A DNA stretch of 64,000 nt from Marsupella aquatica (taxonomy: Eukaryota > Plantae > Marchantiophyta). The stretch spans positions 14,600,330-14,664,329 of the forward strand of contig OZ316898.1 of NCBI GenBank assembly GCA_973895155.1. Direction: 5' to 3'. The notes under the pieces are model-generated. The model did no database searches. It saw only the letters and a program-made list of their open reading frames with translations, and was not told where the DNA came from. Below, piece by piece: positions 6,072-64,000 of the stretch. The first letter of the stretch is position 1. Every line of letters starts with the position of its first letter. The translations under genes and the position numbers were made by a program.

Positions 6072-7097
6072 GTGATGTGCACTTCGTCAAAATAATGAAG
6101 ATAAGGAGCAATTATGAAAGGTATCCTAGCTAGGGACATAGTTGCTATCTATTATAACTCGCTTATCAAGGAGTAAATTAGTGGGCCGGACGGCAGGAAA
6201 CTGAAGCATCAATATCTACATGCATAAAACCTGATGAGTAATAGAAGGATTGTTTCACCACTTTGAGCAAATGGGGTTTTACCAGCAAATTTAGACTGTC
6301 AATGTCTCCCTTGACACCCAATGGAATTGGCTGGTATTGGGCTTTTCAACGAGTATACTGCTAGTTTTCATGAGGAATTAAGAGAGCTATAAATTTCTAA
6401 TTAGTTCTCAATCTCTCACTCTCTCATTGCCCATACTCCTACTTCCAAAATTTTACAGGAGATACCTTTGACATTTACTTCCAAAAGTTTACAGGAGATA
6501 ACTTGGACATTTAATATCCCCATTGATATCCGACCAAATTGGCTGTTCTGGGGCCTGTTAGGAGTGATCTTGGAAAGACCTTACCAGCAAGCCTAATTTT
6601 GTCAAAATTTCATTGAGAAGTGAGAGACCTACAAATTAAGATGAGCATCTCGTTTCCTTGTTACACTTCACTCATCTGTCTACTATCTACGATATGAGCT
6701 CAAAAGAGGGGCTCAATGTAGTCCACCCAACAATCTTCTATGTAGGAGCATTTTGGCAAACATGCAGGTTTATCCAGCCAGGCTTCAATTTCCCTCTCAA
6801 TTTTGCTTTCCATCTTTTAAAAATAAGAAATTGAACTCAATAAGACCACCTTCCAATTGTAAGAGCCACCAACCCATACTGGCCTTTGGAAATAATTGTA
6901 TCAGATACAGTGACCCATGCTTATCAGTGCTCCATAGTGGGCATATAGTGCTCTATGGTGGGTGTATAGCAGATCTCACTGACACACCCACCATGGAAAC
7001 ACCATGTCCACCCAGTGATTCTCTCCTTCGCCACAGTTACTGTGCAGTGCTTCTGCAAGAGTAGATGCGTCACCAATATCTGGCAACAGGTTGTTGC

Positions 7098-7225
7098 TAA
7101 ATAAACAATTCTGGATGAGCATTCCGGAAACTCATTTGTTGTTGCCCATTGGGTCCCGCATGCAATAAACAATTCTGGATGAGCATTCCGGGAAAACTCA
7201 TTTGTTGTTGCACATTGGGTCCCGC
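7098..7225. repeat. ~65-bp tandem duplication
   Basis: aataaacaattctggatgagcattccgg..aaactcatttgttgttgc.cattgggtcccgc occurs twice back to back. Confidence 0.85.
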
Positions 7226-10200
7226 CTTCCATGCTGCCATGGGACTTGCGAACAGAAATTGAAACCATAAAACTTGCAAAACAGAAATTAGTCTCCGTCA
7301 TGAATTGGAACCCAAAATAGGATTAGTAAGAGAACCCACCAGACATATTGCGCATTTCTATCATGAGCAAGTTCTCAAGCAACAGAGAACACCAGCAAAG
7401 ATCGTGATTGCACAAGAATGGGAGTACTTCAGAAATGGAAATTATTCTCGTTCATGGAACTGGAACCCAAAATAGAGTTCAGGCCCCACTCTCAAATTAG
7501 TGTTGCACAAGTTAATTGGGGACAAACTCTAATTGAGAGATAAATCCAATTAATGTGAACAGTATACATGGAAACGGGAGGCTAGTAGCATCTAACAGTG
7601 GGACCAACGGGAAACGGGAGGCTAGCATCAAAGACTAGTGGGACCCAAGGGGTTCTAATAAATAATTTTTGGGAAGCTCGTCCACCTGCTAATCCCCTGG
7701 TGCAATCATGACTGCAATTCCAGAAACAAAGAATGATGTCTGCCCTCGTGAGGAATGTACCATGACTGGCAATGGAGAGAAAGATTCTTTAGAAAACACA
7801 ACATGATTGTCTAGGTGTCAGACTGGGAGTAGACTTGGGAGCTCAAGAATTGAATGATTACAACCTCACCAGTAATTCTTTTGACTGAAACGAGATTCAG
7901 TTCCGATAGTACCGATTGATACGATGGATCACGAAGCTCATTCTCTGAGTCCAGACACAGTCTCTTAGAATATTCAATTGACATGTTAATAAGAGATTTG
8001 GCTCCGTACGATTTCAGTAACCCAAATCGCTTGTAACTAGATTTCGTAGAGTACGAGTCTCGATGTGCTCAGGTGCCCTGGTCCAGAAGCTAGAAATTAA
8101 GACTCAGGTTGATTGGTAGTCAAAATAATTCTGATTCAAGAGTTGGTTTCTTAAGATTCCCGACATTCATCTAAAATTGGGTGACGAAGACGTGAACTTC
8201 ATATCATAGGCCCGGAGACAAGTTGCTCCTGTGTCTATCATGGGAATGTTTCGAGAATCGAAGGTGATGTCAGCTCGAGGTAATCACTGGTTATGAACTA
8301 TAAATGATTTGTGTCAGGCGATAAGTTTCGGCATATTCATCTTCAACTGCAATTGTCAGCAGAAGTCATTCGTGAATGGAATTCGTAAGTATCATTTGTC
8401 CATAAATGCACCAAATTTAGCCCTACATGGTTTACTGAAGCCGTCCTAGGCAGAGAATTTTCGACCCAGCTGCAAGCCGAAATCCATTAGCCAAGAGACT
8501 CCTTACTTAAACGCTGTCATGATACAGGATGATCTGTGGGCCAAGGACGTGATCTTGTAGCTAGAATATCGAAGCCACTAGTATCAATTCTAGTGCCGCA
8601 ACTAATCTCGAAATACGGCCCCAGACATCCGTGAGTCATCGATCCTATTGAGAATTTTGAAGCATGGATTACTGTGGAAAGAAGGACTCCAGGCGCATTA
8701 CGTTCCCTCCCTCCAACTCATCTAGATCATCAGCGATTACGCCGGCCTGTCGGCAAACGCTCAGAGGAATCATCAGTAGTGCTAGCTCAGGCTGTGCGTG
8801 TCTGAAAGCCGTGCCCGCCAAACTCCAGATGAGTACAATGGTAACAACCGCCCAACGTGTCGAAGACCATTCGCTAGCATTTCATCAAGGATGGGACGCG
8901 AAATGTAATTTGGCCCCGTACATTACGCTGGTGTATGGCCAGGCGATGCCAGCACAAGTTGGCGTTATGGAGATGAGACTTTGCAAGCGATTTGGGTTAC
9001 AAGATTTGATGGGGCTCGGATGTCCCGGTGTGACGAAAGTTGATCAACTGGAAGTAGGCTATGTTGAGTTGATACTGTCGCAAACCGTAACTGAAATCCA
9101 AGGCCCGGAACAGCAAAAAACAACGCTATGATTTCAAATCTCGAGAGATTCCCGATGAAAATAATAATGTATAATATTCGTATAATATTCGTGTACTGAA
9201 TATTACCCATACCTTCCTCCTTTCTCCGCCAGGTGTCTTGATGTAATTGACCAAAGCTGGCCTGAATGAACTTCAAGCCAGTCCTTCAATGGTAATTGCA
9301 ATTACTGTACTCTCGTGTGCACGATAGCAAACTACAAGGCTTCCTAGCCTTTGAGTAATTCGAGGAGTGGTGTACTGGGCTCATTTGATAGCCGAATGAA
9401 AGTAACTTCCAAGCGGGCTTCCAAGATGTTCGCATCAGTTCAGCTGGTCAACCTGGAGAGACCTAGGTCGTGTCGTTCAAACACTTCTCTCCCACATTCA
9501 CACGCATACGTCCCCGGGACTACTTTCTTGGCTAGAATTTTGTGTCATTCTGCCCAAATTAAAGTGACCTACAACTCAATTTGTGTGAACTCATTACACT
9601 TTCACTTGTGGCCGATACTACTCGACATCCCACGCTGATCGAGTTGATTCATCCGGGTTGACAATCAGGAAGTTGATAGATTGCATTTCAAACGAACGTG
9701 GAAGTTCACGTTGTTTAGGCTACGTAGCCTCTCCTGTTCTTGTTGCACCCCTGTCGCATGCATCTTGACAGTCTGGTAGACTTCTTTGTAGACACTGTCG
9801 GAATCCATGGATTTAATCGAGGTGGGATTACGAGCCGCCGAGCAGAGAGACAGTCATGACCGTAAGCTACTGTAATCGTCAGTTGTAGAACAATTCACAG
9901 GACCTCAGCGGAACCCTCCTTACATAATTAAAAAATTGCTCAACAATTTTGAGTGAAATAGTATATAAGGACTCTATATTTAAGCAGGAGCTCACTGATA
10001 TATAGAGACCACCCACGTGGGTCCAGCATAATTATGGGGACCTTTTCCAGCTATTCCGTCCTTCACTTTTGAAAGGAAGGCAGCTCGAAATAATTGTGAT
10101 ACGTCTACTTGAAAGCTAACTCAACAATGACCAAGGAAGACTGAAACGATTCCAATCCCAACAAACCGTTTGTTTAGAAATACTCGAGCGGCAAAAGCTG

Positions 10201-28982: not shown

Positions 28983-29305
28983 TGTAGAGGTTAACTCAGT
29001 CTTGGGTTGAACTATGGTTAGTATGTTAACTAGGTTTAGAGTAAACCCTAGTTGAAGAGTTGGTCCTTATCTCTTCAACTCCTATGTGGTGTGAGAACAC
29101 ACAAGAGAGTTCTCAAGAGAGAACACAATGATATAGCAAGAGATGAGAGCTTGAAGAGATGAGAGCTATGGTGATGCTTGAGTAGACACATAACCATTAA
29201 TAAAGCTTGGTCTTCCCGTGGACGTAGCCAACCTTGAGGCGAACCACGTAACTATTGAGCACGTGTATGTTTGGAGTGTTTTTCCTGATCTGATTTCTCC
29301 CCACA
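28983..29305 (+). repeat. 5' LTR of copia element
   Basis: tgtagaggttaac...ctccccaca; 7 substitutions relative to the 3' LTR over 323 bp. Confidence 0.96.
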
Positions 29306-42627: not shown

Positions 42628-45360
42628 TGGAGAATGATCCTATCTCTTCAAGTGAATGAGAGAGGTATAATACTTGGAAACATGGACACCTCCTCTTTCA
42701 AGTTCTCCTCATACTTTTGTTTCCTAGGTTCATTGTTTATATTGTCATTACCAAAGGCAAGTGATGATCTTCTCTACCTCTTATGTGTGAGATATATGTT
42801 TGATGCCCCTAGTGAAACATGTTTACCTCATGGACCCCTAGGAAACATACTTACCTAATAGGCCTCCTGTCACAATTTTCTGTCAGATGTTCTTCTAACA
42901 AGCACTATAACCAATTTTTGCTTCATGGAGTGACCACTATGCTTCCCAGAAACACTGTGGTCAACCATGACTGTAAGGCAAACTGCATTTTTGGACCGTG
43001 CGGCCAACCCTGTATGGTCAAACAAAAAGGTGGAACCACGTGATTAGGGAGAACGCAAAAGTGGCCGCAGGTGCCCAAACTGCAATTTGAAGACAATATG
43101 AATTATATCTTTGGATTCAAATTTTTACCGTATCTTGATTAGGTTCTCAATTAGGTTTGCTTTCATGTGCTCCACATGGGGTTTTCACGATGGTTTTACC
43201 TGCAAACTGTCAGTGCGGAGTACCTCAGACCTGTGCAGTCGCTCTCTTCCACAGAAATTCCCTATGTGGTCGCTCTCATTCACTTCCTCTGGCACTTTTT
43301 CTGTCACTGGCCAATGGGAATGCCCCCACTACTGCCAAAAAAATGTTCGACAAATGATCAACCACAATGTTGAGGCTCCCCCGCGCAACGCAAAATAGAA
43401 AAGCATGAAGAATGATAGGGAGACCCAAAGGTGTCTGGGTACCATTGACTACCCTAAACCCTTGAAACAAATGAAGACTTAATTCATTTTGTCTTCTCCG
43501 GTGGTACATTGCATTGTTGCCCATTTTGATGAGCTGCGGAATACTACAGTGACGAGCGTGGTGGACTGGGCTCAGTAGATTGTGGCAACAAGCGTGACAG
43601 GTGGACAGGGCTGTGGAATGCAGTGTACTATGAGGCACTGGCTGTGGTCGACTATACACAGTAGGCACCACACAAGAACAAGATGTACGGGTCATTCAGA
43701 GGGGTCCTACTTGATGAAAAATATTGTGGGGGATCCCATCAGGTAAGAAAGTTTCACCAGGGGGCCCATCAAGCATATACCTCATGTGCACAACTTTTGA
43801 CTAATTTGATTGTCATCAGGGCAAGTGAGAATCTGTTCCTTATGTGCACAACTTTTTAAGACTTGTGCACTTCTACTTTCTTCTTCATCATGTAAAATGT
43901 ATTTTTTTAGCCATGTGCTGTACTTTTACCTTTGTATTTATCCCACTCAATCTATCAAATACTAGCAATAGCCATCTATACATCACTACAAGACAAACAA
44001 AAAAATGAAACATGTTCCATGATGAACATGCTTGGGAGAGCTTGTAGGGTGGGTCTACTATTTACTTAGGCAAATGAGCAGTGAACTATGAGCAAGGCCC
44101 CTTGTTTATAGTGGAGCTACAGTGATTGTAGTTTATACTTGTGGAGATGTAATTTTTTCTAATACTCTGGTGCAGCCAATAGTTAGAGGCCCATGTTGGG
44201 GAATGGGATGTTGTGCATGATACTTTTCCACCCTACGTACTATAGTACCTGCTGTTTTTTTACCTACAGTACCAATTCTTCTCAAATTTAGGTGAAATCT
44301 TCCACCAAAATTTATAAATCAGTAAAAACTTTAGGTGAAAGCTTGCAACTTGTATGGATTTTTGGCTCTTTGGTCGTGGTCGTGTTTGTCCTTTCGGGAC
44401 CTCTTTTCCTTTTTGTTCCATTTTTCTTTGTTTCACACTTTTGTGTAAATTGGCTCTCTATACTAACCTTCTTCAGGTTTTTCCCATGGTTTGTACCCCG
44501 GTTTGAGCTGTCGGACAACTTGTCATGTTGTCGGACACGACAACCTTGTACCCTTTATTGGGTCACCTGCCATTAGGATCTTGTCAGCTGAGCTTTTTGT
44601 TCTTAGAGAGTACTCTATATGAAAGCATGCAACTTGTGATCTCACTTTAGGACATAACTACGGAACAAATGCGCGACCTTCTACCAATCTCTAGGGAACT
44701 AGTGGAAAGTCCATTCCAAAATGGGTTCCAAAATTCCTGGCTTATACTTTGTGTCACATCAGCAATTTCCGCCACAAACACAAATGACTATGTTTGCGTC
44801 AACAAATAAACATGACCCTTTACATTTGCGTAATGCCAGCAGAAATCAAATAGACCCAGGAATGGTAAAGACTTCTGAAATTTGAAAATTTACATTCAAT
44901 AAAGAGTGGAGGAAAAACATAACATCTTGTTCAAAAAGCCAATAAAACTAACAAGATGTCCAATACTTTGGACATTTGCCAATTTGAATAACTAAGTTAG
45001 TTTTATTCAAAAAGCAAATGACTATGTCCAAAGTCTACAAGGGAAATTTTGTGGGACCAGCTGCCTAATATTTACGTATAATATTTGATAGTGATATGTG
45101 TTCCCTTTATTTTTCTTTGTTTCATTGCACTAGGAGCTAGAGAAGGAAAGATTAAAAACTCACTGGCAAGACCTGTTACTAATTAATGTCATCCTGGATT
45201 GTGCAAAAATAAATGAGCATAAAAAATTTGTACCCAACTAACAAAATAGTTTAGAGTGCTAAATATGGGAATTTAAGAATGTTATGAGTGTTATGATGTA
45301 AATGCTGACTTTGAAGCGTATGCAACATTTTTAAATTAAGAAGTGACAAGATAGGAGAAC

Positions 45361-48352: not shown

Positions 48353-51300
48353 TCAGCTATGTGAATTTATCTGGACCTTCCAGCCTCTACAACTAGCATG
48401 TACTCTTGCAAGAATTGCCATGTAGTCTCCTGACCTGCACTCCATGGATAAAACGCATGTTAACTACACACGGTAGAAAGCTTTTTCAAGTCAGTCAACC
48501 CACATAACTACAGTTTTTGTGCGTTCGGCCAAGAGAAAAGAAATTGGTACCTGGTTCCGTAGACACTATGCACAGCAGCAAGAATAGCATCCTTGGCAGC
48601 ATCTTGGCGTTTCTAGAAACAAATAAAACTACGATTTCAGTGAGCCCTGTGGCAACTTATGCAATATAACAACTATCTGCTTATCACATCTCTACGGCTA
48701 ATCACCCGTCCCACTGGGCCATTTCAGTGATGTAAACAAGCGATCATTTCCTTTCGTATGTCCCTATACTACATAGTAAGTCTCTTAAACCTGTTGCTAT
48801 CTAAGCTTAAATAAACCGTCAAAGCTTGACAAGAGGACATTGTTAGCTTCCTAACAGTAGTTTACTTTGCAAACGCACACCATAACAGAGATGATACAAA
48901 CAGCAAAAAAGAGGAGACAAATAAACCATCATTATTATCCACATTCAAGCGTCTGAATCAGTACATAATAAACGTGGTTCACAATCATTTGTCATTGTCC
49001 GCAAAATGACAATGTGAAGCCCACAATAGAACGTAATAATGGGAACAATAGTTCCAGAAACCATTGCTAAAAATTAGAACTCAAATGTTAAAAGAAGTTC
49101 CCTAAACACCCAACCCATCAAATACAAAGGTTTCAGGCAACCTTCAAGAGTGGGACGAATTCACATTCACGAGGTCTTGTAACGTACATGTGCCTCATGG
49201 TAAAGTCCGGCATACAAGTTCGCGTAGAAGTAATCAGCTCCCTCGGTGGAATCCACTGCTTGTAGGAGCTGTGCAGCAACCGATGGGTTACAATGCAGAG
49301 ATAGGAACCAGAGTAGAGGGTGCAGCAACTTTCTTGAACAGAGTCTGTAGTAAGTGTCCTGAAAGAAATCATTCAAGGACCGGACAAAGACACGACCGAT
49401 AATGTGAAGAACGATAGAAGTACTTTTTCCGTGGATCCCCGGTCTCTGAAAAGGTTGTATATCTCTTTCATGATCGGCCTCCTGTCTGGACCAACCTGCA
49501 AACAGTCAAAATTGGTTTCTGATATTAACACACTCTGCTCCATGTGAGGTACTTCCCCGGTACTTCAAGGCAAATAAACTCCTAAAATATAACAATCTGG
49601 CCGGACGAGAAGAAACAACAGAAACAACAGAAACAACAGAAACAACAGAGAAAGGCAAGGGCCCTGTTGTCATCCCTTTGGACCCTAGCGTTTCTAATGC
49701 AAACAATAATTCCTAGATAGACGATTCTCATCCTCCTTTCTAATTAGGCACAAACTACAAAGCACAAGCTGTCACCCATAAGCATACCGCCAGAAAGCAC
49801 CGTCGGGCTTGATCAACACCTAGATATTGTGCCTCACACAAAAAACACCATATGGCCTGCGGAAAACATTCAAGATGTACTGTAAGTATCCTACGAAGAG
49901 AAACGGTACTCAAATTCTCGACTTAACTTTTCTCAACGTAGGATTATTCCTTGGTCAAGATCTGCGTTCAAATGCTCACAGACTAGTGGGCTTCGTAAAC
50001 GTCAGTCGTGTTGAGTTTTCTCAGTTAAACATCCAAAACGTCTCCCATTCAATGCTAGAAGTACGATTTTATTTTTATCTATTTGCAACTTTGAAACTTA
50101 CTCCTTTTAACTCATGAGAGGTTACAAAAATTCACATCATGCAGTGAGGAGTCTGGTGGTACAACGATGTTCTAGCCCTTTGAAAACTTCTCAAGGGCTA
50201 ATTATTTCCATACACGCGTGTTCCAATTGTGAGTAGTCCACACCAAAGGAAAGTAATACATCTGTCGGATGAGTTAATCGCTTTTACTGCAAAAGGATAT
50301 CAACTAGGTCTCGCCGAGACAAGAGCGTGATGCCTGCAAGACACCAGCAACTTATAGCTGACAGTAAATAAATGGAGTGTAATGTTTGGAAACCCTCTAA
50401 CCCTAATCTGACTGGTATTGATGATCCAGTTCAAGAAGTGCTGATACTCTGTTCAGACAAGTCCAAGGAATCCTTGTCGAAAACTCGTTTTCCAGCCCTC
50501 CAGGTAAGGCATATAGGCTCAGTGCCGATTTGAGATCCTTTTATATTTTCATGTCTGCTGCTCCTGGACAAGGGTCAGTGTAAGTCGCTTTTGAGTGGCT
50601 GCCAAGCTCCTGGGAGAGAAAGATTTCCATGGAGGAAGACTAGCTCTCCTTCTCAATGTTTAATCTTTCAGATGGAAAAAAAATATGACTTGTTCTGTGA
50701 GGAACGCAGTCGCACTGTCAATTTCCTTCATGCCACATTTGTACATGGCTTGATCCATTTCTAGAGCATCCGTACCAGTGCCTAAAACGAATTCTCTGCC
50801 CTCTTCCCACTTGCAAAATGGAAGGACCTCGCTAAGAGAGCGGATAAAAGCCTTGACTCAAAATTGCACACCTGAGACCACAAAAAGACAGCGGCCCTTT
50901 GAAAACGTCCAATGGCATATGTTCCAATTGTGAATTCTACCATACGAAAAGGAAGGAATACAGATTGATTACACATCCTTACCTCTTCAGTGTCATTGGG
51001 ATTGACCGCCACGTCATCCCTGAACTGCTTTGCACCCTCCTCAAACCTGCCCAATAAGACCACGACTCCGCCTTAAAATCCTTGTCAGCAATTGGATTTC
51101 AGTCGACACATTCTTAACGTCGCCTCAACAACATTCAAAGAAAGCTTCAAGATCATCTAAGTAGGAAAACTCAAAGCGCATTAATTACCAGCAATGGACA
51201 GTAGCAAGTAGAAGGCCAAACTAAATAAGTACCTGTCGACGTAATACAAGGAGAGCCCTCGCTGCCACAGATCTGGAAGCAAGGAACAACACAAACTGGT

Positions 51301-54026
51301 GAAATTTAGTCCTATATGTAGCACAATCCGATTATAGAGAGCTCCGCCTCCTTGAAGAGAGAGGGGCAAAGGAAGGGGAGGAGTGATTTCAATCGAATTG
51401 ACGGCAAGCACTCTAAACCTGAAGTCTCTACTCTGTTGTAGCCAAAAAGGTCATGAATCCAGAGCTCAATGTAACAAGCCCTGTCAAATCAGAGTGATTC
51501 ATCAAGCTACATGCTGATCAAATATGAGCCATACTACTACCATGCGAACTTAATGAATACCACAGATGGCAGTGACTGAGAGACTAGCTCCAATGCTTCA
51601 TCAAATTTCTCCAAAAAATATGAAGCATAGTACTACCATGCGAGCTTAGTGAAAACCGCACATGGCAGTGACTGAGGGTCTAGCTCCAATGCTTCATCGA
51701 ATTTCTCCAACGAGCCTTTCACGTCCCCCTGTCACGATCAAGTTTGGCAGACCACGTAAAAAACATTATACATCATCGGATACGAAACATCTGATACGGA
51801 CTACTAACAAAACCCATGAATTGGTAGTAAGTGGATGATTGAACTCATAATGTGTACAAAAGCACAGAAGTACAAACTACTGTGTCACGACGGCTTCTAC
51901 TCATATCTAGCCAAAACTTCAGCAGCATATGCAACAATAGAACTCAACAGTGCAACCTCGATAAAACAACAAGGCAGCCACGAGGTACTCTATTATGCTC
52001 CTTTTCAAATCCTGCCTGGAGATTCCTACATTGGACGCGAGTATTGGGATTAATTGAAGCTCGTTCTCAGTCGTTTCTACACAATGGTTCTTGTCTCACA
52101 GTGTCCTGTATTGACCGGTACACATGTCCTGACGATGGTCAGGAAATTGACCATCGCCAGGTCATTGCTGGTCAATGCCAAAGGTCCTGATCGTTGTCTT
52201 AAAATGATGCCAGAAAACTTCGTCGACGGAAGAAACCTAACAAATGAATTCTTAAGGGAAATTCGAGGTTAAGCCATAGAAGTTCATTTTCACTCTTACG
52301 AGAGTAAGTTAAGTTTGTCAAGACTTATCTACGGCCATGCAGTGGATCAAAACTAACCATGAAGAAAGAAAAGAGTAATCCAATTGTAACAAAGTTTACA
52401 GAGTTTGTACTGTAAAGTTCACTATGAACGTGAGAGGCTGATTGTGCTTTCAAACTCTTTTTCCACATTCGACAACAGCAATGGTGATTTTTTACCGCAT
52501 TTTGTCCAGGAGACGCTAGGTGCGTCAAAACGAAGCGGAAATGTCGAGGGTATGAGAATTGCAAACAGAAGATTTCCAGCCGGGGTTTTGGAGGCTAGCG
52601 AGCTCTATCGGGGACAAGAATTGGCAAGAATTTTCAGGCAGAATCGGAAATCACACTGGGATCCAGCGTTCTAAAAACATCTTCCTTTTTTCTTCCTCCC
52701 GCATTTCCGCAACCAAGAAGTACATAGGAATTTGGTATGGATACGAATCCTTTATTTCTACATTGGGCATTCCTCCAATTTGACTCAAAGAATTTCGTGT
52801 AAGGTCTGATAGAACAGTCACCCATCCTGAATTCTCAATTTGAGTAACTTTGCGGGTAGCGTGTAAGCAAATTGAGGCCTGCACATCACGTTCCTGCAGC
52901 TATAAGGCTCGACAGACTCCACGGGATTCTCAATTCTGTGACAGTAACTACGGTATTGGAAGCTATGTAGACTTGCCAGGGAGTGGATAAAAACTGCGAC
53001 CACGATTCAATAAACGAGCTGCACTCTCTGCTTAGGTGATTTAGAGGGCAATTATCATAAGTAGTGAGTTTTCCGGTTGAGCAAAGACATCGATTTCTTA
53101 AGCGTGCACCAACCTTGTTCTGGAAACGCACCTTAAGATTCAACTGATTCACTCTGAAGCCGTTGACCCGTCATTTCAATTTCGGTGGGAATTTCTGCAC
53201 TGAATTGGTCCATCTGGGACGGGGAGGCCGTCAAATTGAAGTTCCAGAAGGTTTATTTGACTTCTGAGAAGAAAATAAAGTTTCGGATACTCCTGCCTTT
53301 GCATTGTAACCCGACCGTACATCATGCTAGTTATATATCTCGAGCGAATGATTATATCAAACAGAGTGTTTTCTTATTTCCTTCGCACCAGTTGTCTCCT
53401 TTACCTTGCACTGGGAGACCACTATTCGAATGATTTATGCAACGACCATAAATCAGTGAAAATCTCATGATTGCGGATTTCATTCAGACTGACACAATTG
53501 GACACATTATGAGAACGTGTAGTCTAATCTTTGAAAATTCAGGACATAGAAAACCATGGCGAGACAGCACTGGACGCCAACATTCATAGTCAGTGGTCAG
53601 GCTGTGCAAAGGCGACGGCGTGCACACCTGAGAGAAGAGCTGCATTCCCTTCCTCGTGGCCACCATCGCCTGCTGACGACCCCCCTGGCCTGCCATCGCT
53701 GCCATGGCCAAAGCGCCAGTAGCAGCCGCTCCCACCAACCCTGCTGCAATCCACGTGACGGGGATGCTTCCCAAGACGAGGCCTCGCCTGTTCACACTTG
53801 GAAGGCCACCATCGCTGCTTCTTGGTACAAAACGCCCTACAGCTCCACCATTCCTTAGAGAAGAGCCCACAAATGTCCTTGAGCTGCTGCTGCTTCTTTC
53901 ACAGCTGATGATATCCCTTTTGCTTGATGAGAATCGGTGCACATTGAACGACGAGCAAGAGAGTCGGAGCGGCGAGAGCTCGCAACAGACCGTGAGGGTG
54001 TGTGCTACTGTAATGGAAGTCACCAT
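48353..54026 (-). CDS. Tetratricopeptide-repeat (TPR) protein with N-terminal plastid-type transit peptide, 9 exons, ~311 aa
   Basis: Exons with GT-AG introns and consistent phases: 53628-54026, 51662-51728, 51233-51272, 50983-51046, 49788-49856, 49424-49495, 49188-49268, 48551-48612, 48353-48434 (936 nt). Translation RKGMQLFSQGDVKGSLEKFDEALELDP..YLWQRGLSLYYVDRFEEGAKQFRDDVAVNPNDTEEAIWCFLCEAQ..VGPDRRPIM..YFYANLYAGLYHEA..SGDYMAILARVH matches a conserved plant TPR family (Arabidopsis At3g05625-like, from memory). Confidence 0.92.
49610..49648. repeat. (AGAAACAAC)4 intronic tandem repeat
   Basis: Read directly from the sequence. Confidence 0.85.
51527..51710. repeat. ~95-bp tandem duplication covering the 3' part of TPR exon 2 and its donor site
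   Basis: cata.tactaccatgcga.ctta.tgaa.acc.ca.atggcagtgactgag...ctagctccaatgcttcatc.aatttctccaa at ~51529 and ~51627. Confidence 0.85.
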
Positions 54027-54138
54027 TGTTGAAAGCCTCCGTCCTAGCGCAGGACTCCACTTCTCCCGGTTTGACCTTGCCCGTCAAATTGGGCGTTTGA
54101 GAGCGGCAAATTGACAACCCGGCACCCGGGTTCGGAAG

Positions 54139-54590
54139 CAGTCCGGGAAAGGAAACGTCCGGTTCGGGGTTCGGGTTCGGGAGGAGGTTCGGGAGGAGGT
54201 TCGGGTGGGGGTCCGGGTGACTAATCGGGTCCGGGTCCGGGGCGGAGGCGCTCGGTGGGGGCTCGGGGTGGGGTTCGGGTCCGCTCGGTGGGGGTTCGGG
54301 GTGGGGTCCGGGTGCGGCTCGGGTCCGGGAGGAGGAGGTGCGGGGGGTTCGGGTGGGGGTCCGGGTGGAGTTCGGGTCCGGGTCCGAGGGGTTCGGGTTC
54401 GGGAGGTACGGGGGGTTCGGGTGGGGTCCGGGCCCGGGGCGGAGGCACTCGGTGGGGGTTCGGGGTGGGGTCCGGGTGGGGTTCGGGTCCGGGAGGCCGG
54501 GGTGGCTCCGGGTGGGGTTCGGGGTTCGGGGTCCGGTTCGGGGTTCGGGGTCCGGTTCGGGGTTTGGAAGTTCGGGGTTCGGGATTGAGG
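54139..54590. repeat. G-rich subterminal repeat array (GGGTTCGG / GGGTCCGG)
   Basis: Dozens of degenerate gggt(t/c)cgg units, likely transposase-binding sites. Confidence 0.85.
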
Positions 54591-54710
54591 CTCGGAGAAT
54601 TAGGGTTTCTTACGGTTGGAGGATGGGGCCGGCCGGGAAAGGGTCGGGGGCTCGGGAGAGGATAAAAGGAGGAGATCCCTCCTCCCCCTCCTCATTTTCG
54701 GTTTTGCAGA

Positions 54711-54824
54711 AAGGAGGAGGAGGAGGAGAGGAGGAGAGGAGGAGGAGAAGGAGGAGGAGGAGGAGAGGAGGAGGAGGAGGAGAGGAGGAGGAGGAGGAGG
54801 AGAGTAGGAGAAGAGGAGGAGGAG
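54711..54824 (+). repeat. (GGA)n purine microsatellite
   Basis: Read directly; it ends at a consensus donor GAG|GTAAGT (54825). Confidence 0.9.
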
Positions 54825-54942
54825 GTAAGTGTTTGGTTTTGGTTTTTATTTTTGATTTTTGGTTTATTTTTGTTTGTTTGTGTTTTGTTTTGTGATTTTT
54901 TAAGTTTTCTTTGTGTTTTAAACCCTAACCTTAGAGCCAAAT

Positions 54943-55329
54943 GGAGGGATATAAAGAAACACTTGTACGCGCACGCTTTGAGCCTCGGTTCGGTTTGCGA
55001 TACTCCGTACAAGAATTTCTTAATATCACCTTAACAATTTAGTCTCCTTTGTTCATTAAGTAAAACATTTGCGGAGATAGAGGAATCCATGTACGCATGC
55101 TTAGAGTTTCGGCTCGGTCTGCGATACTTTGCATGGATACCACGATTCGCCGAGAATGTTTTTACTTGAATTACAAATGAGTGTTAAGTTATAGACACCA
55201 AATCACATATGTCGAAGCAGGAATATAACAACTTTGAAAGAAAAGAACACTTTTGTGCGCATGCTTTGAGCGTCCGCTCGGTCTGCGATATTTCACAACT
55301 GTTGTCTTTCTATTTTATTGTTGTTATAT
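54943..55329 (+). ncRNA. Cluster of three miRNA-like hairpins with a shared ~36-40 nt loop and unique stems
   Basis: Arms gatataaagaaacacttgtacg / cgtacaagaatttcttaatatc (54948-55027); aagtaaaacatttgcggagatagaggaatccatg / catggataccacgattcgccgagaatgtttttactt (55058-55167); atataacaac..gaaaagaaca..ttgtg / cacaa.tgttgtctttc..gttgttatat (55223-55329). Each encloses cgca(c/t)gctt(t/a)gag....g(g/c)tcggt(t/c)tgcgata. Expression is unknown. Confidence 0.55.
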
Positions 55330-55517
55330 AGAAAGGTAATTAAAATCATGTGTGCAATAAAAATACATAATGCATGGGAGAAACAAACCGGGAAAAGATA
55401 ATAACAATACGACTTGTAATTTTCAGGTTGGTCGTTGAATCCTTATTGGAAGGATTTTATTTAAATCCCGGTAAGATCTTGTTCCTCCCTCACATATTCC
55501 TTTTGTGAAGGGAAAAC

Positions 55518-57119
55518 ATGGTCATCGAAAATTTTAGTTTAGAGTATAGGCAAGTGTTGGAGATGATCACAAAACATGTGAATGAGGGATATGAGCCGAA
55601 TCTTGTTGCTCTGGATGCATTGAAGAATGCTCGAAACACTCTCGAACATGCTAGGAATTCTAGCAAAGTGGCCGGGAAACAAAAACGGAAGGGGGCAAAC
55701 GAAGAGGCAAAACAGGTTCGACACAATGTGGTAGTGTCGATATGGAAAGAGATACTTTATCGCTACACTCAACCGAAACAGTATGGGGTGGACGGGTTCG
55801 AGAGGGAGTTCACAAGACACGGAGAGAAAGGATACAAGAACTTTCTTGGTGAGATAACCCATTGTATGCGGGAAAGTGTACAAAAGGAGGACAATTTCAC
55901 ACGAGAGCAAATGAAGTCATTTGAAGATGAAACTGAGAAATCGGGAGGATTTCTGGAAAATTTGGCACTCAACTTGGAGAAGCATGTTTGGGATAATTTG
56001 GCAGCCAAAGTGGAAGAGGGTGACACTACATTGCTTGGAAACCCCGGGATGTACACACACAAGAGAGAATTGCTAGTGAAGTGGAGTAAGGAGTTGACAA
56101 TGGCGAAATCTGATAGCAATGTCAAATATGCTAACGAGATTGTGCACTTTGGGGATGTCAGCATCAAAAGTGCTCGAAAAGGAACACGTCCATCGCGTGT
56201 AGTTCCAGAGGTTAGGAGTATCCATTTTCTTAAACCTGAGCAGGTGCACAACACACGTCGCATTGGGAAAGGAATCCAAGGAGAGGTATACACTTGTCGT
56301 ATATTACATTGTCCTCTCATTCCCGTCAACGTGACCTTAGTCGCAAAACGGTTCAAGGATGGAGACAAGCATAAGAGACGAACTGACGCATTACAAGAAG
56401 TGCTTATGGGAGGACTGAATCATAAGGGAATCGTTGGAGCTCTTGCGTTGACTATTGAGGATCCGCCAAAACTTATTTACGATCACTATAATGGAGGTGA
56501 CTTGGGTAGCTTTATTGATAAGTGCGGCATATCGTCAAAGAGCAAGGGGAAGGCACAGATCACGACGGACCTTGATTTCAAGTTCATTTCGGAGAAGAAA
56601 CTCTTGTTGGAGAACCGGTTGGGAATCGCCTTGGCTTTGCTGGAGACATTGCAATACTTGCATGAGCATGATCGATTTCATTGTGATCTTCACTTTGGAA
56701 ACATCCTTCTTCATTTCGATCACGAGCACGATGTGGCTATTAAGGTGTATGTTGGTTTATATGATTTTGGCTTGTCTAAGCATAAATCACAGTGCAAATT
56801 ACCAGCTAATCGGATGTGGCCCACAGCAACAGAAAAAGCAGCAGCATACCAAAAACAATTTCCACAGTTGGCTCCGGAGCTTGTTCAACCTACCCCTGTC
56901 GAGTTTAGTGAAAGTACCGATATATATGCTTTGGGGAATATTTTTGAGACATTATTGACAGAGAATTGGGATGGAATGTCTAAGGGTTCACGGTTTTTGG
57001 GGAGGGGTTGGAGTGCACAAGTGCATGGCCCCAAATTGGATGTCATAATCCGTGAAATGATGGCCACGGATGCCAAGAAAAGAATGGATTGTGCTTTTTG
57101 GAGTTTGAAGATAGTTTGA
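55518..57119 (+). CDS. Intronless protein kinase (TKL-like, non-RD) with an unknown ~240-aa N-terminal domain; transposon cargo
   Basis: 533-aa ORF with all core motifs: IGKGIQGEVY, VAKRF, alphaC Glu (LQEV), HKGIV, YNGGDL, YLHE..FHCDLHFGNILL, LYDFGLS, LAPEL, TDIYALG, and subdomain XI Arg (DAKKRM). Confidence 0.88.
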   Translation: MVIENFSLEYRQVLEMITKHVNEGYEPNLVALDALKNARNTLEHARNSSKVAGKQKRKGANEEAKQVRHNVVVSIWKEILYRYTQPKQYGVDGFEREFTRHGEKGYKNFLGEITHCMRESVQKEDNFTREQMKSFEDETEKSGGFLENLALNLEKHVWDNLAAKVEEGDTTLLGNPGMYTHKRELLVKWSKELTMAKSDSNVKYANEIVHFGDVSIKSARKGTRPSRVVPEVRSIHFLKPEQVHNTRRIGKGIQGEVYTCRILHCPLIPVNVTLVAKRFKDGDKHKRRTDALQEVLMGGLNHKGIVGALALTIEDPPKLIYDHYNGGDLGSFIDKCGISSKSKGKAQITTDLDFKFISEKKLLLENRLGIALALLETLQYLHEHDRFHCDLHFGNILLHFDHEHDVAIKVYVGLYDFGLSKHKSQCKLPANRMWPTATEKAAAYQKQFPQLAPELVQPTPVEFSESTDIYALGNIFETLLTENWDGMSKGSRFLGRGWSAQVHGPKLDVIIREMMATDAKKRMDCAFWSLKIV

Positions 57120-57472
57120 ACGTTTCCAGATTGCACATTGCATTTGCACAACAGTCCATATCTTAGAGATTAGAGATTAGGGTTTACACAATTTTGTAAA
57201 GGTCACCTTAACGATTATATGTTTATTCATTGTATGTCAATTACAATGTTCTGCATTTTGTTGATAATATTCTATCAAACTTTGTCGTGAATGCCCAAAA
57301 TTGTGCTAAATGTGTTTGTACATTGTCAAATATCGCAGACCTTTTGTACACATCGCAAACATGGGACGATGGGAATTGTCTTCTGATGATGAAGACAAAG
57401 AGTTCATGACACAACATCTTACCATGCAAGGGTCAAGGATCCTATTGTGACGATGAAGCTCTTCGTAATAAT

Positions 57473-59287
57473 GTGTTGGATAATCTTACAACCATTGGCA
57501 TTCACTATGAGGCTAAACCCAAGGTTGATGGAACACCGGCGCCAAACACAAGAAGATGGGAAGATGAGGGTATGAAGGATGAATGGAGTATATTAACGCC
57601 CAATGTAAATCCTCCCCATGACGAATGGGCCATGAATGCAAAGGAATTGGAGATGTTGATGCCAAAGAAAGACTTTTGGCCATTAGCACAACAAGTTTTT
57701 CACGATCCGGATCTTTGGGCAACAAGATCATGGGCGCAAGAAAAATTCACCATGTCCAAAGTAACACATGCAGGTGTTAAATCACATTGGCAGCAACAAT
57801 ATCGAGAGTTTGCTCCACACAAAGCCCAAACAAAAATGAGTTCCGTTTACCCTCCTTTTATCCGATGTCTGATTGTTGAATTCATTCTCAAGTGGAAGGT
57901 GGATTACCATTGGGAAAATAGTGCTGGCAAGCTGACTCATCAGGTGCATCCATCAGTGGTTGCGATTGCAACGAATAGGAATACAACTATTGCAAAGGAC
58001 CCTTCAATGGAGACTTCCAACAAGGGATCCAAAAGAAAGCTAGATGACACTGGGGAGGGATATGCGCATGAGAAGGGGAAAGCGGCTGTACTTCCTCGAG
58101 TCTCCATGCCTGACCGTGCAGCACCACCAACCAATGTGGAGTCAACGCACACCAAAAAACCAATCCTTGTAGGTGTTGGGAGTAGAACTCCACACGCAAA
58201 GAACAACAATGTTACTGATGCTAACAAGGATAAGTTCAACCTGCACAACATATGCAAGAGCTTGGGGGCAGATGTTGTAGAGGTGATTGAGACAAATCTC
58301 CGCACGAAGTATGTAGTGAAGCTATGTGAATGTGGCAGCATCAAAAAGTTCAAGTCACAATTGCAACAAGTTGATATAAAGATGAGATCACTTGAGAAGA
58401 AGCAGAACGAGCCGACGACCAATTCTGAAGTGATGTTGTACAAGTGTCAATTGTTTGACAAGATGGAAGAAATCAATAAGCTGACAAAACAACTTGTTGA
58501 AAAAGAACGTCAATGCAATGAATTGGCACGACTTGAGGAGAAGGACAAGATCATTAATGATCTTAAAAGTGAACTTGCAACGCAAGCAATCATCATATCA
58601 AATCTTCACGAAGAGGTGCAAGAATTTAACAATGGTGCTTTGGGGATGAGGTCAAACAAAGGGCAAGGTGAATTATCGTCGCCAAATTTTGTTAACATGC
58701 AAATCATAGATCCTACAGGGCACAACAACCTTTTTCTAGATGTGGAGGTTGACGCGGAAGGTATTGATAGGTTTTTTGATAAGTGGAAAAAGGATGAAAC
58801 TATGGCAGCATTTGTTCGTGAAAAGGACGACAAGTGTACTTGGTGTCTATATCCTTGGGGCCCTGAATCTGTTTCCATGTTGGGAACCTGCGGTCATATA
58901 TGGCATCATGCTTGCTTGTCTAAATGGTTGAAGAAAAGCCAAAAATGTTGGTGTCGCACACCATTTCATGAACGCAAGTATGAGCAACGAGGATTGTTGA
59001 AGCAAATGCCATCAATGGAGACTCAAAAAAACACTGAAGATATGACTGAAGATATGACTGAAGATACTATACCGGCGATGCAAATAGATGAAACTCCCAT
59101 TGAACATTTCACAATCAATGAATATAATTTGTCAGATGGGGAATTTGACAGGTTGTTATTCAGTGGTCGACTCGATGAGTGGAAACAATATGCGGCAGCC
59201 AACCAGCCATCAATAGATGAGCAAAATTTGCAACGATCCATTCGGCGTCATCGACGACGTCAACAACAGGCAGAGGTGAAAACATAA
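57473..59287 (+). CDS. Coiled-coil + C-terminal RING-H2-like protein (putative E3 ligase); transposon cargo
   Basis: 604-codon open frame (first in-frame ATG at 57572; likely original ATG at 57361 in another frame). Heptad-rich region KSQLQQVDIKMRSLEKK..EEINKLTKQLVEKERQCNEL..LHEEVQE. RING motif CTWC-x14-CGHIWHHAC-x10-CWC. Confidence 0.8.
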   Translation: MLDNLTTIGIHYEAKPKVDGTPAPNTRRWEDEGMKDEWSILTPNVNPPHDEWAMNAKELEMLMPKKDFWPLAQQVFHDPDLWATRSWAQEKFTMSKVTHAGVKSHWQQQYREFAPHKAQTKMSSVYPPFIRCLIVEFILKWKVDYHWENSAGKLTHQVHPSVVAIATNRNTTIAKDPSMETSNKGSKRKLDDTGEGYAHEKGKAAVLPRVSMPDRAAPPTNVESTHTKKPILVGVGSRTPHAKNNNVTDANKDKFNLHNICKSLGADVVEVIETNLRTKYVVKLCECGSIKKFKSQLQQVDIKMRSLEKKQNEPTTNSEVMLYKCQLFDKMEEINKLTKQLVEKERQCNELARLEEKDKIINDLKSELATQAIIISNLHEEVQEFNNGALGMRSNKGQGELSSPNFVNMQIIDPTGHNNLFLDVEVDAEGIDRFFDKWKKDETMAAFVREKDDKCTWCLYPWGPESVSMLGTCGHIWHHACLSKWLKKSQKCWCRTPFHERKYEQRGLLKQMPSMETQKNTEDMTEDMTEDTIPAMQIDETPIEHFTINEYNLSDGEFDRLLFSGRLDEWKQYAAANQPSIDEQNLQRSIRRHRRRQQQAEVKT

Positions 59288-59626
59288 GCTGTTGACAATA
59301 ACAACAAAAGGAACTAAAACCAATAGTCTCTACATTTTGATGTTATTTTCATGTAGTTACTATTAGAGACATTTTGTTAAAATAGAAGCGGCATATCCTC
59401 TTTGACAATTATTTTGAACTTGTAATTGGTAAAGAGATTTTGGAGTGACATTACATTGCATATCTCGTTGAGTACATATATTTTTCATTGGGGGCATGGC
59501 GTCGCCCTTTGGAGAATGTGTATTTTTGTAAGAATATTCCATCCTCCAATCAGCCATAGGTTTTGGAAGCATATTGTCGGGCTCACAATCATATTTTTGG
59601 ACAAGTATGAGGAAAATAGACGTGAT

Positions 59627-61145
59627 GAGAGACGGTAGCACAGTGGACTCAGGTACTGATTCTCTGAAATCATTTCCAAAAGGAGATCGTGTAGCACAAT
59701 GAGTTCAACAAAGTCAACATCGCAATGGTTTTAGCCGCCCAAGTTGAGAATGATTTTGTAGAAGGATGTATACCTAAGTCCACTCACTTTTCCTGTCTTT
59801 CATAATTTTTTCCGCTATTGCTGCTACGGCCAATGACATTCATGCACATGCGAACCGAGGCCAACGCCTACTCCTTTGCCCACCGCAAAAATGGGCCCTC
59901 ATTACAACTTGAAGTTGAACGGAGTTTATTTGAGTACGAGAGAAGTTCTGAAAGCAAATGCACTCTCAGGTCAAATTTTCAGGTCCTTCGAGCAAAAAAT
60001 TACTGAGTATGTCATCGATCCGTTGGTTTCACAACTTCTCTCGTACTCAAATAAACTCTGTTCAACTTCAAGTAGCGTAGCTGCTACGGCCAATGACATT
60101 CATGTGCATGCAAACCGAGGCCAACGCCTCTACATTTGCCTACCCCAAAAATGGGCCTTGATTAGAACTTGAAGTTGAACAGAGTTTTTTTCATTATGAG
60201 AAGGTTTATTCAAGCAATGGCACTCTCAGGTCAAAATTTCAGGTCCTCCTGACTTTGTTATTATTGAATATGTCCGTGCTCCGTTGCTTGAATAAATCTT
60301 CTGATAATGAAATGAACTGACCAATTACTGGAGTACGGCTGCTACGGCCTATGACATTAATTCGCACAATTGCATGTTTATATCCTCTCCTTTCCGAATT
60401 CCAATTCGAGCTTGGACATCCTCTCGTCAGCTGATCTTCACCATTGCAGTTGCTCTTCACGCAAACCGAGATAGCAGTCTCTAGAATCCTCGAACCTATT
60501 TTATTTCAATGCATCATTCATAGTGTTTGAGGAATCCAAAGGTTCGCGTGAGGAGCAACTGAAAGGGTGGAGACCTGCTGACGAGAGGGTGTCCAAGCTC
60601 GAATTGGAATTCGGACAGGAGAGGATATAAACGGGTGAACTTTGACTTGAAATTGGTGACTGTATTTTGCGTCTGCATATCAATTCGGTGACCGATCTTG
60701 CGGAATCCCCGTGACCCTGTCTGATCATCATCATGACATTGCTCTCCTTGGCCACCAATGGGCCCTCATTACAACTTCAAGTTGAACGGGGTTTATATGA
60801 TTATGAGAAGGTTACTGATTATGTAGGCGATGTGATCATTTCACAACTTCTCTCATAGTCATATAAACTCTGCCCAACTTCAAGTAGTGCAGCTGCTACG
60901 GTCAACGACATTCACCCACCCCAAAAATGGGCCCTCGTTACAACTTCAAGTTCAACTAAGTTTATTTTATTACGAGAAGGTTTATTCAAGCAATGACATT
61001 CTCAGGTCCAATAATGAGGTCCTCTCGACCTCATTATTATTGAATATGACGGTGCTCTATTGCTGGACTAAATCTTCGCATAGTGAAATGAACTAACCAA
61101 TTCATGGAGGGGGCTGGTATGGACTACGGCTGCTATGGCCAACAA
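59627..61145 (+). ncRNA. Tandem array of fold-back hairpins (four ~260-bp-type units, one long 92-bp-stem hairpin, one upstream imperfect hairpin)
   Basis: Scaffold motifs gctgctacggccaatgacatt (59820, 60080, 60338, 60892, 61129) and aatgggccctcattacaacttgaagttgaac (59890, 60150, 60757, 60926). Inverted arms at 59907-59947/60033-60073, 60190-60220/60281-60311, 60376-60467/60541-60632, 60774-60813/60845-60885 and 60959-60994/61059-61094. Confidence 0.65.
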
Positions 61146-61381
61146 CAAGGTACTTTGAAATAGTCAGTGTTGGAGATTTGGAAAACATGTTGCGTTGGTG
61201 TGTCTCTATGACATTCTCAAATGCAAATACAAATAAATTATTCAATCATTGTACAATAATAAACACACTGCAAGACAATACAATCATGTTACAAAAAATA
61301 TAATTGTTTATAATTTTGTCTATGTCAGATACGACAATATAAGAGTAGCAACACTTGATATTATCCTAATGAAAAGATGCT

Positions 61382-64000
61382 TCAAGGCTGTGAAGAGAAA
61401 TTTCGTGCATTGTTGTTACAATTTTTGCACAAAAGCGCATTCCACTCGTCTTGTTTATCGCCCCAACTAAGTGGATCACGATTGTGTGACTGAACATTGT
61501 GCGACGTTTCTTGAAATGATGATATTCCTCGAAACCCACCAAGGCCAATAGGCCTGTTCGACGTATATGGATTCATGACACTTGGCCCTGCATACGCATT
61601 CAAGGGTGGACCTGCATGGTGTTGCCAGTTTGCATGTGGGTCGTTTGAAGTTTGACCTTCATGATTGTTGTATCCATGAAAAAAGGTTGATGTCCTTCCA
61701 TCCGTCGGATGCCCTGCTGTGCCTGTGCGTTGCTCGTTGAAATATGGTCTGCTTGTGTCAACATCATTCGCAAAGTTTGACCAAGGTGACCTTGGTTGGG
61801 AAGGCATCACAAAGTTTGTGTCCAATGATGCATCTTCCTCGTCTTGGATTTGCGATTCATCAATTGTAGGATACATCTCCAAATCCATTTCATTCTCCCA
61901 TTCCTCTGCATCAGTGATGTCTGTATCTGGTGGAATACGAGTCAAGAACTCACTATCCTTATCCAGGGAAAATCCGTGTAGCAATTCATCAGCATCATCA
62001 ATTGTATCATAATCTTTGACATCTTCTTCACCAAGAGCCGCACGTGTTGCATCGTACTCTTCATTGCTGCACAACTCCATGGAGATAGGTCTAGGTCCAT
62101 CATTTGTTCTTCTTCTTTGGTCATAACGTTCATATATAAACGTATGCAGGTTTCGAACATTTGTGAGCCCTTTCTCTACCCTCATGTTTGTAAATACAAA
62201 CACCAAATCTTTTGCTCGATCATTTGTCAATCGATTGCGACTTTTGGAATGTATAAATCCATACGAACTCCAGTTTCGCTCGCAAGCTGATGCGCACACT
62301 TTTTGGTGTAAGATTCTTCGCGCCAGGATTCTCAAATGTTTATAATCTGCACCATACGCATGCCACCACTCTGCTGGACTGACATTACCTATACTTGATT
62401 GGGCGGCTCCCATCGCTATTGATGTGTTGGGATTTTTTTTTTTGGCGTCAATGGCTTGACTGTGGATGGCAGAAATAAGTTCTCTGACGTCGCGATCATG
62501 GTTGATCCCCTCCTTCACCTGTTGTTCTGAATATCTAGCAATGTATTCATTGAAACCCTTGTAGAGTTCTGGATCTCCAGCGACATCTATGTCCTCATCA
62601 AAAAACATTTGGGGATTGAGATATGCTGCCGCTAGCATGAAATCAGTGGTAAGAGATTTTTTTTGATCCAAATACACTTTTAGTATCTTTGGTTTCAATA
62701 CCTCTGTTACCAATGGACAATCCTCCATGCTTGCTTTCAAAACATCAATCCCTCTTTTCAAACTCCAATACAACCAACCTGATTGCGGAGAATCACCATC
62801 AAATTCTCGCAACATCTTGACCAACGGAGTAAAGAATTTAACTGTATCCTTCACTTCAACCCAAAATGTATCTTGCTGTATCCACATTTTAAGTTCGTCT
62901 GTCTTTCCCCTCGTCATGTATCCAACTGATTTTGGTCGCAATGGAAGTCTATCACGAGAAGACTGCCAATTATCATCAATGACCATCTGTTGTAAAGCTC
63001 CTCTTAGCTCCAACGCTCTTTGTGCCATTAGGAAATTGGTCGCAAATCTAGTTGCATTTGGATTCAACAGTTTTTTGTCAGGAGATTTTCTTGCAAATAT
63101 TGCAGAAAGCTTTTGCGATGATGAAACTACTTTTACTATCCACCTCAACCGTTTAAAAATCTTTTGGAATGGATTCTGTCCAGCATCATCTAGCACTACA
63201 CGCTTGTGACCACACATATCCTCTAGCAGCAAATTAAACACGTGGGCAACACACTAGCTCCAAGTGACATGAGGATACTTTTTCATGACTACCTCACAAC
63301 CTGCTACACGATTTGCGGGTGCTCCATCAGTTACGATTTGAATAATATGATCTGCACCAATATCCTCAATGTATTTCAACCACATGTCGCCAAGATATTT
63401 CCCATCTTTCTTGTCAGCTTGCGCAGCATTCCAACTATCCAAGAAGAAGTCACCTTTAGAAGTCAACAACATGACATTCATCAAAGGTTCTCTTCGGACA
63501 TTTTCCCATCCATCTGAAGAAAGAGAATACCCATAAGGTTTTGCCTCCTTTAAAGTTTGCGTCATGTCCTTTGTGAGATCCTCCTTACTGTCTTCCAATA
63601 ATTTCAATCGCAAACTTCGCATCGTAGGTAGAGAATAACCATTGACAATCCCTTTTGAAGTCTCTATGATTGCTTCTCGAAAAAAAGGATTATTTGAAAC
63701 ATTGAATGGAATACCACTGGTGTAGAAAGCTTTCGCCCAAAGCTTATCCAAATTTGTTCTATTTGGAATTTGATAGGCATCCATAATTGGGTTAGGAAGA
63801 TTTACTGGCCTATCTCCTTCCCTTACATGTGTATCATCCATGTCAACATAGTTTGACCCTCGTGTGGATGCTTGCGAATATGAACTTCCAACGCTTGGCC
63901 TACGACCTCTCACATCCCGCAAGATATGACTTCCATCCCGTCGTTTGTACTTTAAGGTCGGTGGAACCTTTATCACATTGTACATAATGTTGATGGCATC
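61382..64000 (-). pseudogene. hAT transposase (DUF659 + hAT dimerisation domain), one in-frame TAG at 63254-63256; N-terminus beyond the window
   Basis: AFYTSGIPFNV..FF, YSLSSDGWEN..PLMNVM, IIQIVTDGA, W(S*)CVAHVFNLLLEDM, ATRFATNF, LVKMLREFDGD, AAAYLNP, PAEWWHAYG..LA.RIL....SASACERNWSSY..IHSKSRNRL...AKDLVFV..N. Confidence 0.92.

Follow-up and report, generated by a model that had tools for sequence, protein, structure and literature searches.

A liverwort hAT transposon family with kinase, RING-H2-like and transposase genes and structured leader RNA hairpins, examined from a copy in Marsupella aquatica

We analysed a stretch of 64,000 nucleotides (nt) from the liverwort Marsupella aquatica (assembly GCA_973895155.1, contig OZ316898.1, positions 14,600,330 to 14,664,329 of the forward strand), referred to below as the window. 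From position 54065 to beyond position 64000 lies what is very probably a defective member of a multi-copy family of liverwort hAT transposons, cut by the window end. Reading from about 54.0 kilobases (kb), we observed G+C-rich repeats, an (AGG)n tract followed by GTAAG, three hairpins, a kinase gene, a RING gene, a five-hairpin array and a hAT transposase gene on the minus strand (Table 1). All of the parts listed in an initial annotation of this DNA, namely two hairpin clusters, a kinase, a RING protein and a convergent hAT transposase, were present. hAT elements are textbook one-gene DNA transposons; the liverwort element measures 12-13.6 kb and holds three genes in two convergent units, and we found no description in the literature of a hAT element with a kinase and a RING gene. 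The same layout recurs between loci, the two extra genes move with the transposase gene inside common terminal inverted repeats (TIRs) and target site duplications (TSDs), both are under purifying selection, and the leader hairpins are under selection at the RNA level. By its TIR, TSD and transposase the element is firmly a hAT transposon, and its complement of genes and RNA is undescribed.

The order kinase, RING and convergent hAT transposase was observed in five loci spanning at least three lineages: the window, L002 (a contig from Logan, a public read assembly), and L006, L007 and L008 of Calypogeia fissa. L006, the C. fissa genome locus holding a complete relative, was reached by a search with the RING protein; L007 and L008 were retrieved via the transposase and not via the cargo genes. 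Compared with the window, the kinases are 47-74% identical, the RING proteins 38-59% and the transposases 48-79%. The kinase-RING pair was additionally observed on shorter contigs in L001, L004 and L005. Pairwise ratios of nonsynonymous to synonymous divergence (dN/dS) were 0.12-0.25 for the kinase and 0.22-0.39 for the RING protein, with dS saturated between lineages, and one close pair gave 0.25 and 0.34, respectively. The initial annotation had read the two genes as a selected, co-mobilised module and not as Pack-type fragments, and this reading held: the genes accompany a convergent hAT transposase in five loci, both frames have remained open at identities of 38-66%, the ratios of 0.12-0.39 depart from the neutral value of about 1, and no close cellular homologue was found in the protein searches described below. 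The family also accounts for "orphan" kinase and RING genes of liverwort assemblies, which can be annotated as belonging to transposons.

Both ends of the element were observed in C. fissa, so that a TIR and a TSD are in place at the level of the family. L006 has a perfect 10-base-pair (bp) TIR, CCAGGTTTGA, and a perfect 8-bp TSD (GCGGATTG, 8 of 8 positions), while in L008 the TIR CCAGGTTTGA is perfectly inverted as in L006 and the TSD agrees at 6 of 8 positions. The window reads CCCGGTTTGA from 54065, followed by subterminal sequence homologous to the ends of L006 and L008. Public contigs were aligned to window positions 51200-57100 as a check on the left end. Ten contigs from run X1 match from 54064/54065 onward and carry unlike flanks before that point, and a 9.6-kb single-copy contig from this run (depth 17.1) spans the flank and stops at 54093. 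Contig depth inside the element was 183.5 against the single-copy value of 17.1, and this roughly ten-fold excess indicates that the family is multi-copy in the Marsupella aquatica genome. A terminus at 54139, where the initial annotation had placed it, is ruled out by the homology to L006 and L008 and by the X1 contig ends at 54064/54065. It was off by 74 bases, and with the terminus misplaced the TSD proposed at that time (ttcggaag) and the motif proposed for the right end (displaced by the same 74 bases) were wrong as well. The candidate TSD is the octamer at 54057-54064, and the right end beyond 64000 would be of the TCAAACCGGG type followed by this octamer.

Two observations were made outside the left end. 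A 26-nt stretch at 44497-44525, which begins with CCCGGTTTGAGC, shares 21 of 26 positions with the terminus of L008 on the transposase side; G+C-rich repeats, hairpins and a matching TSD partner were not found near it, and it may be a solo remnant of the hAT family or a chance match. An open reading frame (ORF) of 180 amino acids (aa) on the minus strand (53484-54026), with no Pfam match, starts 39 bases outside the element. The insertion may be in a host gene's promoter or 5' part.

Three copies of a 40-nt motif were observed in the window within the hairpins of cluster 1 (54944-55312). Across the family, 3-7 copies precede the kinase unit, and the motif also stands, inverted, before the transposase unit, in leader hairpins of about 100 nt with stems of about 40 bp. 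We built a covariance model (CM R1) from 45 copies and searched 181 kb of sequence with it. The model returned 49 matches, every one of them in a 5' leader and in the sense orientation of the unit next to it, with none elsewhere in the window; L002, which was outside the training set, gave a 68-bit match. In the 21-bp structure 91.6% of cells were paired, compared with 22-48% for slid partners, and 16 of the 21 pairs had changes on both sides; the observed values were reached by no shuffle, and while the mutual relatedness of the copies inflates such covariation statistics, the effect is still large. Paired positions contained 129 G·T against 8 A·C on the sense strand (92:2 for the kinase-side hairpins and 40:6 for those before the transposase unit), and for 17 of 18 hairpins the sense strand gave a stabler fold than the antisense strand. 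This strand bias is unexpected for a DNA palindrome and argues that selection acts on RNA. As judged from these comparisons, cluster 1 is a conserved structured RNA under RNA-level selection. Two scans of metagenome DNA with the hairpin core were made; the first returned nothing, and the second returned 17 single chance matches without family proteins.

Cluster 1 apparently lies within an intron, as GT/AG signals at its borders are conserved across loci. A G|GTAAG donor about 35-45 nt 5' of the kinase ATG was conserved in six loci, and a pyrimidine tract followed by AG was observed 11-22 nt 5' of the RING ATG in the window, L001, L002, L004 and L005. The conserved mini-exon donor, together with an acceptor before each RING ATG, suggests that one promoter could serve both ORFs, with the kinase and the RING protein produced by alternative splicing.

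The most conserved letters of the leader hairpins fall in the apical part, an unpaired 6-nt bulge and the small apical loop, while the lower stems vary between paralogues. Conservation of an unpaired bulge and loop is more suggestive of an RNA motif bound by protein than of a microRNA (miRNA) precursor, and the leader hairpins would accordingly be cis-acting, protein-bound RNA modules and not mere Dicer substrates. An alternative, put forward in the initial annotation, is that the hairpin arrays are small-RNA factories, miRNA-like or yielding hairpin-derived small interfering RNAs (siRNAs), that knock down host defence genes or regulate the element itself. The dimensions of the leader hairpins, their position on the transcribed strand and the selection at the RNA level would all suit such a role, as would array 2, the five-hairpin array between the two converging 3' ends, the stems of which are long (38-105 bp) and nearly perfect, as in hairpin RNA (hpRNA) loci, with the plus strand more stable in 5 of 5 hairpins and 28 against 14 G·U pairs. 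The best Rfam match, to MIR7533, was also observed on array 2, and none was observed on cluster 1, but its 67.5 bits are far below the gathering score of 230. Moreover, the pattern of conservation within the leader hairpins fits protein binding better, and array 2 is not conserved in sequence between lineages. C. fissa copies contain arrays of 2.2-4.4 kb at the same position that are homologous to one another (83-95%), but no sequence similarity was found between these and the window array, and the spacers of L002 and L009 contain no repeats at all at this position. A blastn search of the array 2 stems against the window and all fetched loci found no matches and hence no possible targets. We therefore regard a small-RNA role as possible but on the unlikely side. 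Array 2 is real but lineage-specific, and not a constant of the family; it may generate siRNAs, separate the converging transcripts, or represent repeat growth in a tolerant spot. The structured-RNA arrays proposed in the initial annotation thus stand in part: both clusters are real and cluster 1 is selected as RNA, but cluster 2 shows no sequence conservation and is missing from two lineages.

The leader motif could also act as DNA, either as sites near the element ends to which the transposase binds or as cruciforms, in the manner of the Ac or En/Spm subterminal repeats. Its inverted orientation at both element ends would fit this, and so would a depth difference in run X5 from organism C, in which depth over window positions 54943-55139 was about 1100 (1102) and depth over the kinase about 2-10. 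This excess suggests that in organism C the hairpin motif is present in numerous short derivatives or in other repeats, as expected if deletion derivatives retain the hairpins. However, the strong excess of G·T over A·C and the greater stability of the sense strand are at odds with a DNA-level motif, and the copies are found 0.9-1.3 kb in from the ends, farther inside than the G+C-rich repeats, which are the better candidates for transposase binding. We consider a DNA-level role improbable and retain the reading of the leader hairpins as structured RNA.

Each of the three genes in the window copy carries one disabling lesion, and the copy cannot be autonomous for this reason. A premature TGA (57117-57119) ends the kinase 17 conserved codons short of the family stop, with the tail still readable in frame. 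In the RING gene the true ATG at 57361, which corresponds to the N-termini of relatives, is put out of frame with the main ORF by a shift near 57427-57430. The transposase is interrupted by an in-frame TAG (63254-63256) where the intact relative L009 has Trp, in the motif around WS-W-CAAH. The cargo ORFs had been described as complete in the initial annotation, which does not apply to this copy. In our analysis the parts flanking each stop or frameshift were handled one by one.

The window kinase ORF matched Pfam Pkinase at 54-57 bits (54.2 against a cut-off of 31.7). The window protein contains the Gly-rich loop (GKGxQGEV), the VAK Lys, the alpha-C Glu, the catalytic Asp and DFG, none of which varies among the aligned family members. 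The usual catalytic loop of kinases is HRDLKxxN; it reads HCDLHFGN in the window and most members and HADLHDAN in L002. The kinase is probably active but atypical. Solved kinases in the PDB matched at E of about 2e-4 at best, and the AlphaFold2 (AF2) model was poor (mean predicted local distance difference test score 48.5) except for a confident N-terminal helical bundle at residues 60-200. A word-based search of 5.8 billion proteins returned 8 relatives of the kinase and 4 of the RING protein, and the kinase profile against 1.84 billion representative proteins returned only 813 matches at E<=0.001, a very small number for a kinase profile, and 18 at E<=1e-30. Neither the word-based nor the profile search found a close cellular homologue of the kinase or the RING protein. 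The nearest named outside relative was a kinase of Riccia fluitans (L010, CM092413.1:39484450-39505235), with 28.5% identity in the kinase domain only, and no hAT or RING gene was found within 10 kb of it. This gene may represent the host lineage that gave rise to the transposon kinase.

The second cargo protein, which is ubiquitin-ligase-like, combines a coiled coil with a RING-H2-like finger, in which the eight zinc ligands are conserved in the family and the final pair is an unusual CxC. The nearest solved RINGs were RNF165/Arkadia (E 4e-6). The window transposase has DUF659 and Dimer_Tnp_hAT domains, as expected of a hAT transposase with a C-terminal dimerisation domain and an RNase-H-like core. 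It scored 42 bits for PF05699 (cut-off 21.4) and 85 bits for PF04937 (cut-off 34.7), and the same domains were observed in L009. A CxxC...HxxxH stretch was noted by eye in the N-terminus of L009, for which Pfam reports no BED domain; the N-terminus of the window transposase lies beyond 64000. Close kin of the transposase (59-69%) were observed only in C. fissa and in contigs, the next relatives share 39%, and DUF659 hAT transposases of angiosperms share 30% or less.

In the model we propose, the family has two convergent transcription units, each beginning in a G+C-rich subterminal region that likely serves as transposase-binding and promoter region. The left unit encodes a very divergent, probably active kinase and then a coiled-coil, RING-H2-like protein, and the right unit a DUF659-class hAT transposase. 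Both leaders contain 3-7 copies of one conserved structured RNA hairpin, apparently within a 5' intron, and in some lineages tandem arrays of long hairpins have filled the space between the two 3' ends. The kinase and RING proteins would act as element-encoded accessory factors on host or element proteins, in favour of the element. Our leading guess, held tentatively, is that they work against silencing at the chromatin or RNA level. A part in controlling transposition or the associated repair is possible but doubtful, and we hold with similarly low confidence a view of virus-like complexity, in which the kinase and E3-ligase pair would rewire host chromatin, silencing or repair and the leader RNA module would recruit element or host proteins or act as a decoy for the silencing machinery, keeping the element expressed.

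The initial annotation had also raised a toxin-antidote or spore-killer type of selfish element, in which the kinase and the RING protein would form a toxin-antidote or meiotic/spore drive pair. The close linkage of two genes that evolve fast and are specific to the element does fit the general pattern of such systems, but nothing in them resembles a known killer or antidote (Pfam and PDB searches returned only kinase and RING), many copies are dead, and a dispersed multi-copy family fits transposition and not a single driving locus. We consider drive very improbable. Passive Pack-type capture of host fragments, or host genes merely lying beside hAT remnants, is barely credible and largely refuted: the distant R. 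fluitans kinase without a hAT or RING gene nearby does make an old host origin of the kinase possible, but the layout of full-length ORFs recurs in the same order across lineages with low dN/dS and saturated dS, both genes lie inside the TIR/TSD boundaries of L006 and L008, and the proteins and the transposase clade are isolated in the searches above.

Several observations weigh against our interpretation of the element as a selected three-gene hAT transposon with active accessory proteins, in addition to the relatedness of the hairpin copies. The right end and right TSD copy of the window copy lie beyond 64000. In L004, a metagenome relative, a SNF2-family helicase gene (4825-7427, in several frames, with SNF2-rel_dom, a RING-like CxxC stretch and Helicase_C) was observed about 220 nt 3' of the RING gene on the same strand, in place of the convergent transposase, and no other locus has a SNF2 gene. 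In L003 (2587-3396) a degenerate kinase copy is followed by a DUF6729 ORF instead of the RING gene, and this ORF may be a nested insertion of another element. From these two loci, the module is not always beside the transposase. A catalytic loop without the usual Arg and Lys makes kinase activity uncertain. The RING finger matched zf-RING_2 at 26.9 bits, just under the Pfam gathering cut-off of 27.3. For the N-terminal bundle of the kinase, Foldseek found nothing at E<=0.001, and the best VIA-align Z of 5.7 is within the noise of helical bundles. The AF2 model of the RING protein was poor and a search of the ESM Atlas with this protein gave no usable match, so that the AF2 models and the Atlas search gave no structural clue to the targets of either protein.

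Table 1. Positions of the features observed or predicted in the window copy, in window coordinates.
Feature	Position	Strand	Remarks
Candidate 8-bp TSD, left copy	54057..54064	n/a	8 bases preceding the terminus; right copy beyond the window
Left TIR CCCGGTTTGA	54065..54074	+	Homologue of the CCAGGTTTGA termini of L006 and L008 (both ends)
Subterminal region, short G+C-rich repeats GGTTCGGG / GTCCGGG	54075..54660	+	Repeat families D1-D3; equivalents at both L006 ends
G+C-rich short-repeat block	54150-54600		Within the subterminal region
TATA-like box (54660-54669) plus first exon, purine-rich, containing (AGG)n	54660..54824	+	Putative; same layout in L001 and L006
Leader intron 1 (predicted)	54825..55425	+	GT 54825, AG 55424-55425; consensus kept in L001, L003 and L006
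Leader hairpin 1	54944..55024	+	CM R1, 58.3 bits, E 1e-12
Leader hairpin 2	55068..55148	+	CM R1, 78 bits, E 4e-18
Leader hairpin 3	55232..55312	+	CM R1, 64.1 bits, E 3e-14
Predicted 45-nt mini-exon (55426-55470) and intron 2 (55471-55510)	55426..55510	+	Conserved donor, before kinase ATG
Kinase gene	55518..57173	+	ORF 55518-57119 (533 aa), family stop 57171-57173; Pfam, family alignment
Acceptor-like AG, 22 nt 5' of RING ATG	57337..57338	+	Candidate alternative 3' splice site skipping the kinase ORF
RING-H2-like gene	57361..59287	+	True ATG 57361, main ORF 57473-59287 (604 aa), RING-H2 ~58826-58954
Hairpin array 2, five long hairpins in ~260-nt units	59820..61150	+	Between two convergent 3' ends
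hAT transposase gene	61382..64000	-	Runs off the window; DUF659 part 63257-63985, hAT dimerisation ~62183-62383

Elsewhere in the window, a 96-nt unit was observed twice in tandem (88% identity) at 51520-51710, within the single-copy flank. Identical 60-nt contexts were observed at 29266 and 35035, 5.8 kb apart, with an integrase-like coding stretch between them (32359), and this region is probably a long terminal repeat (LTR) retrotransposon.

Among known systems, the family shares with plant DUF659-class (Ac/Ds-type) hAT elements the short TIRs, the 8-bp TSD and a transposase with DUF659 and hAT dimerisation domains. It differs from them in its three genes, its length of 12-13.6 kb, the RNA hairpins in both leaders and the low identity (30% or less) of its transposase to angiosperm members. 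hAT TIRs usually start with CAG or TAG, and those of the liverwort family start with CCMGG. En/Spm (CACTA) elements produce two proteins from one transcription unit by alternative splicing; the liverwort family would resemble them in its single promoter, two serial ORFs and conserved acceptors before each ATG, if the predicted splicing is correct, but it belongs to another superfamily and encodes other proteins. Like hpRNA loci and polycistronic plant miRNA clusters, the element has tandem long stem-loops on one predicted transcript. Unlike in these, array 2 is lineage-specific, the loop and bulge of cluster 1 are more conserved than its stems, and no Rfam family is above threshold. VANDAL Mutator-like elements carry VANC anti-silencing proteins (PMC10398659). 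They offer a plausible functional analogy, as DNA transposons that keep extra element-specific genes together with repeated non-coding motifs, but they belong to another superfamily, the extra genes of the liverwort family encode enzymes (kinase and RING), its motif is selected as RNA, and Pfam found no VANC-type domain in any window ORF. Fungal DNA transposons (KDZ and others) encode TET/JBP dioxygenases (PMC12730594) and are likewise cut-and-paste elements in which an enzyme, probably directed at the host's epigenetic control, is stably maintained, although the enzymes, the host kingdom and the transposase families differ. The liverwort family is a small, defined system of two ORFs and one 80-nt RNA motif that is testable in transformable liverworts, and it could reveal the ways in which DNA transposons escape or adjust silencing in a plant whose haploid phase dominates. 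Two enzymes and an RNA structure kept across liverwort species would point to element-encoded manipulation of the host, for which few plant cases are known, VANC being one.

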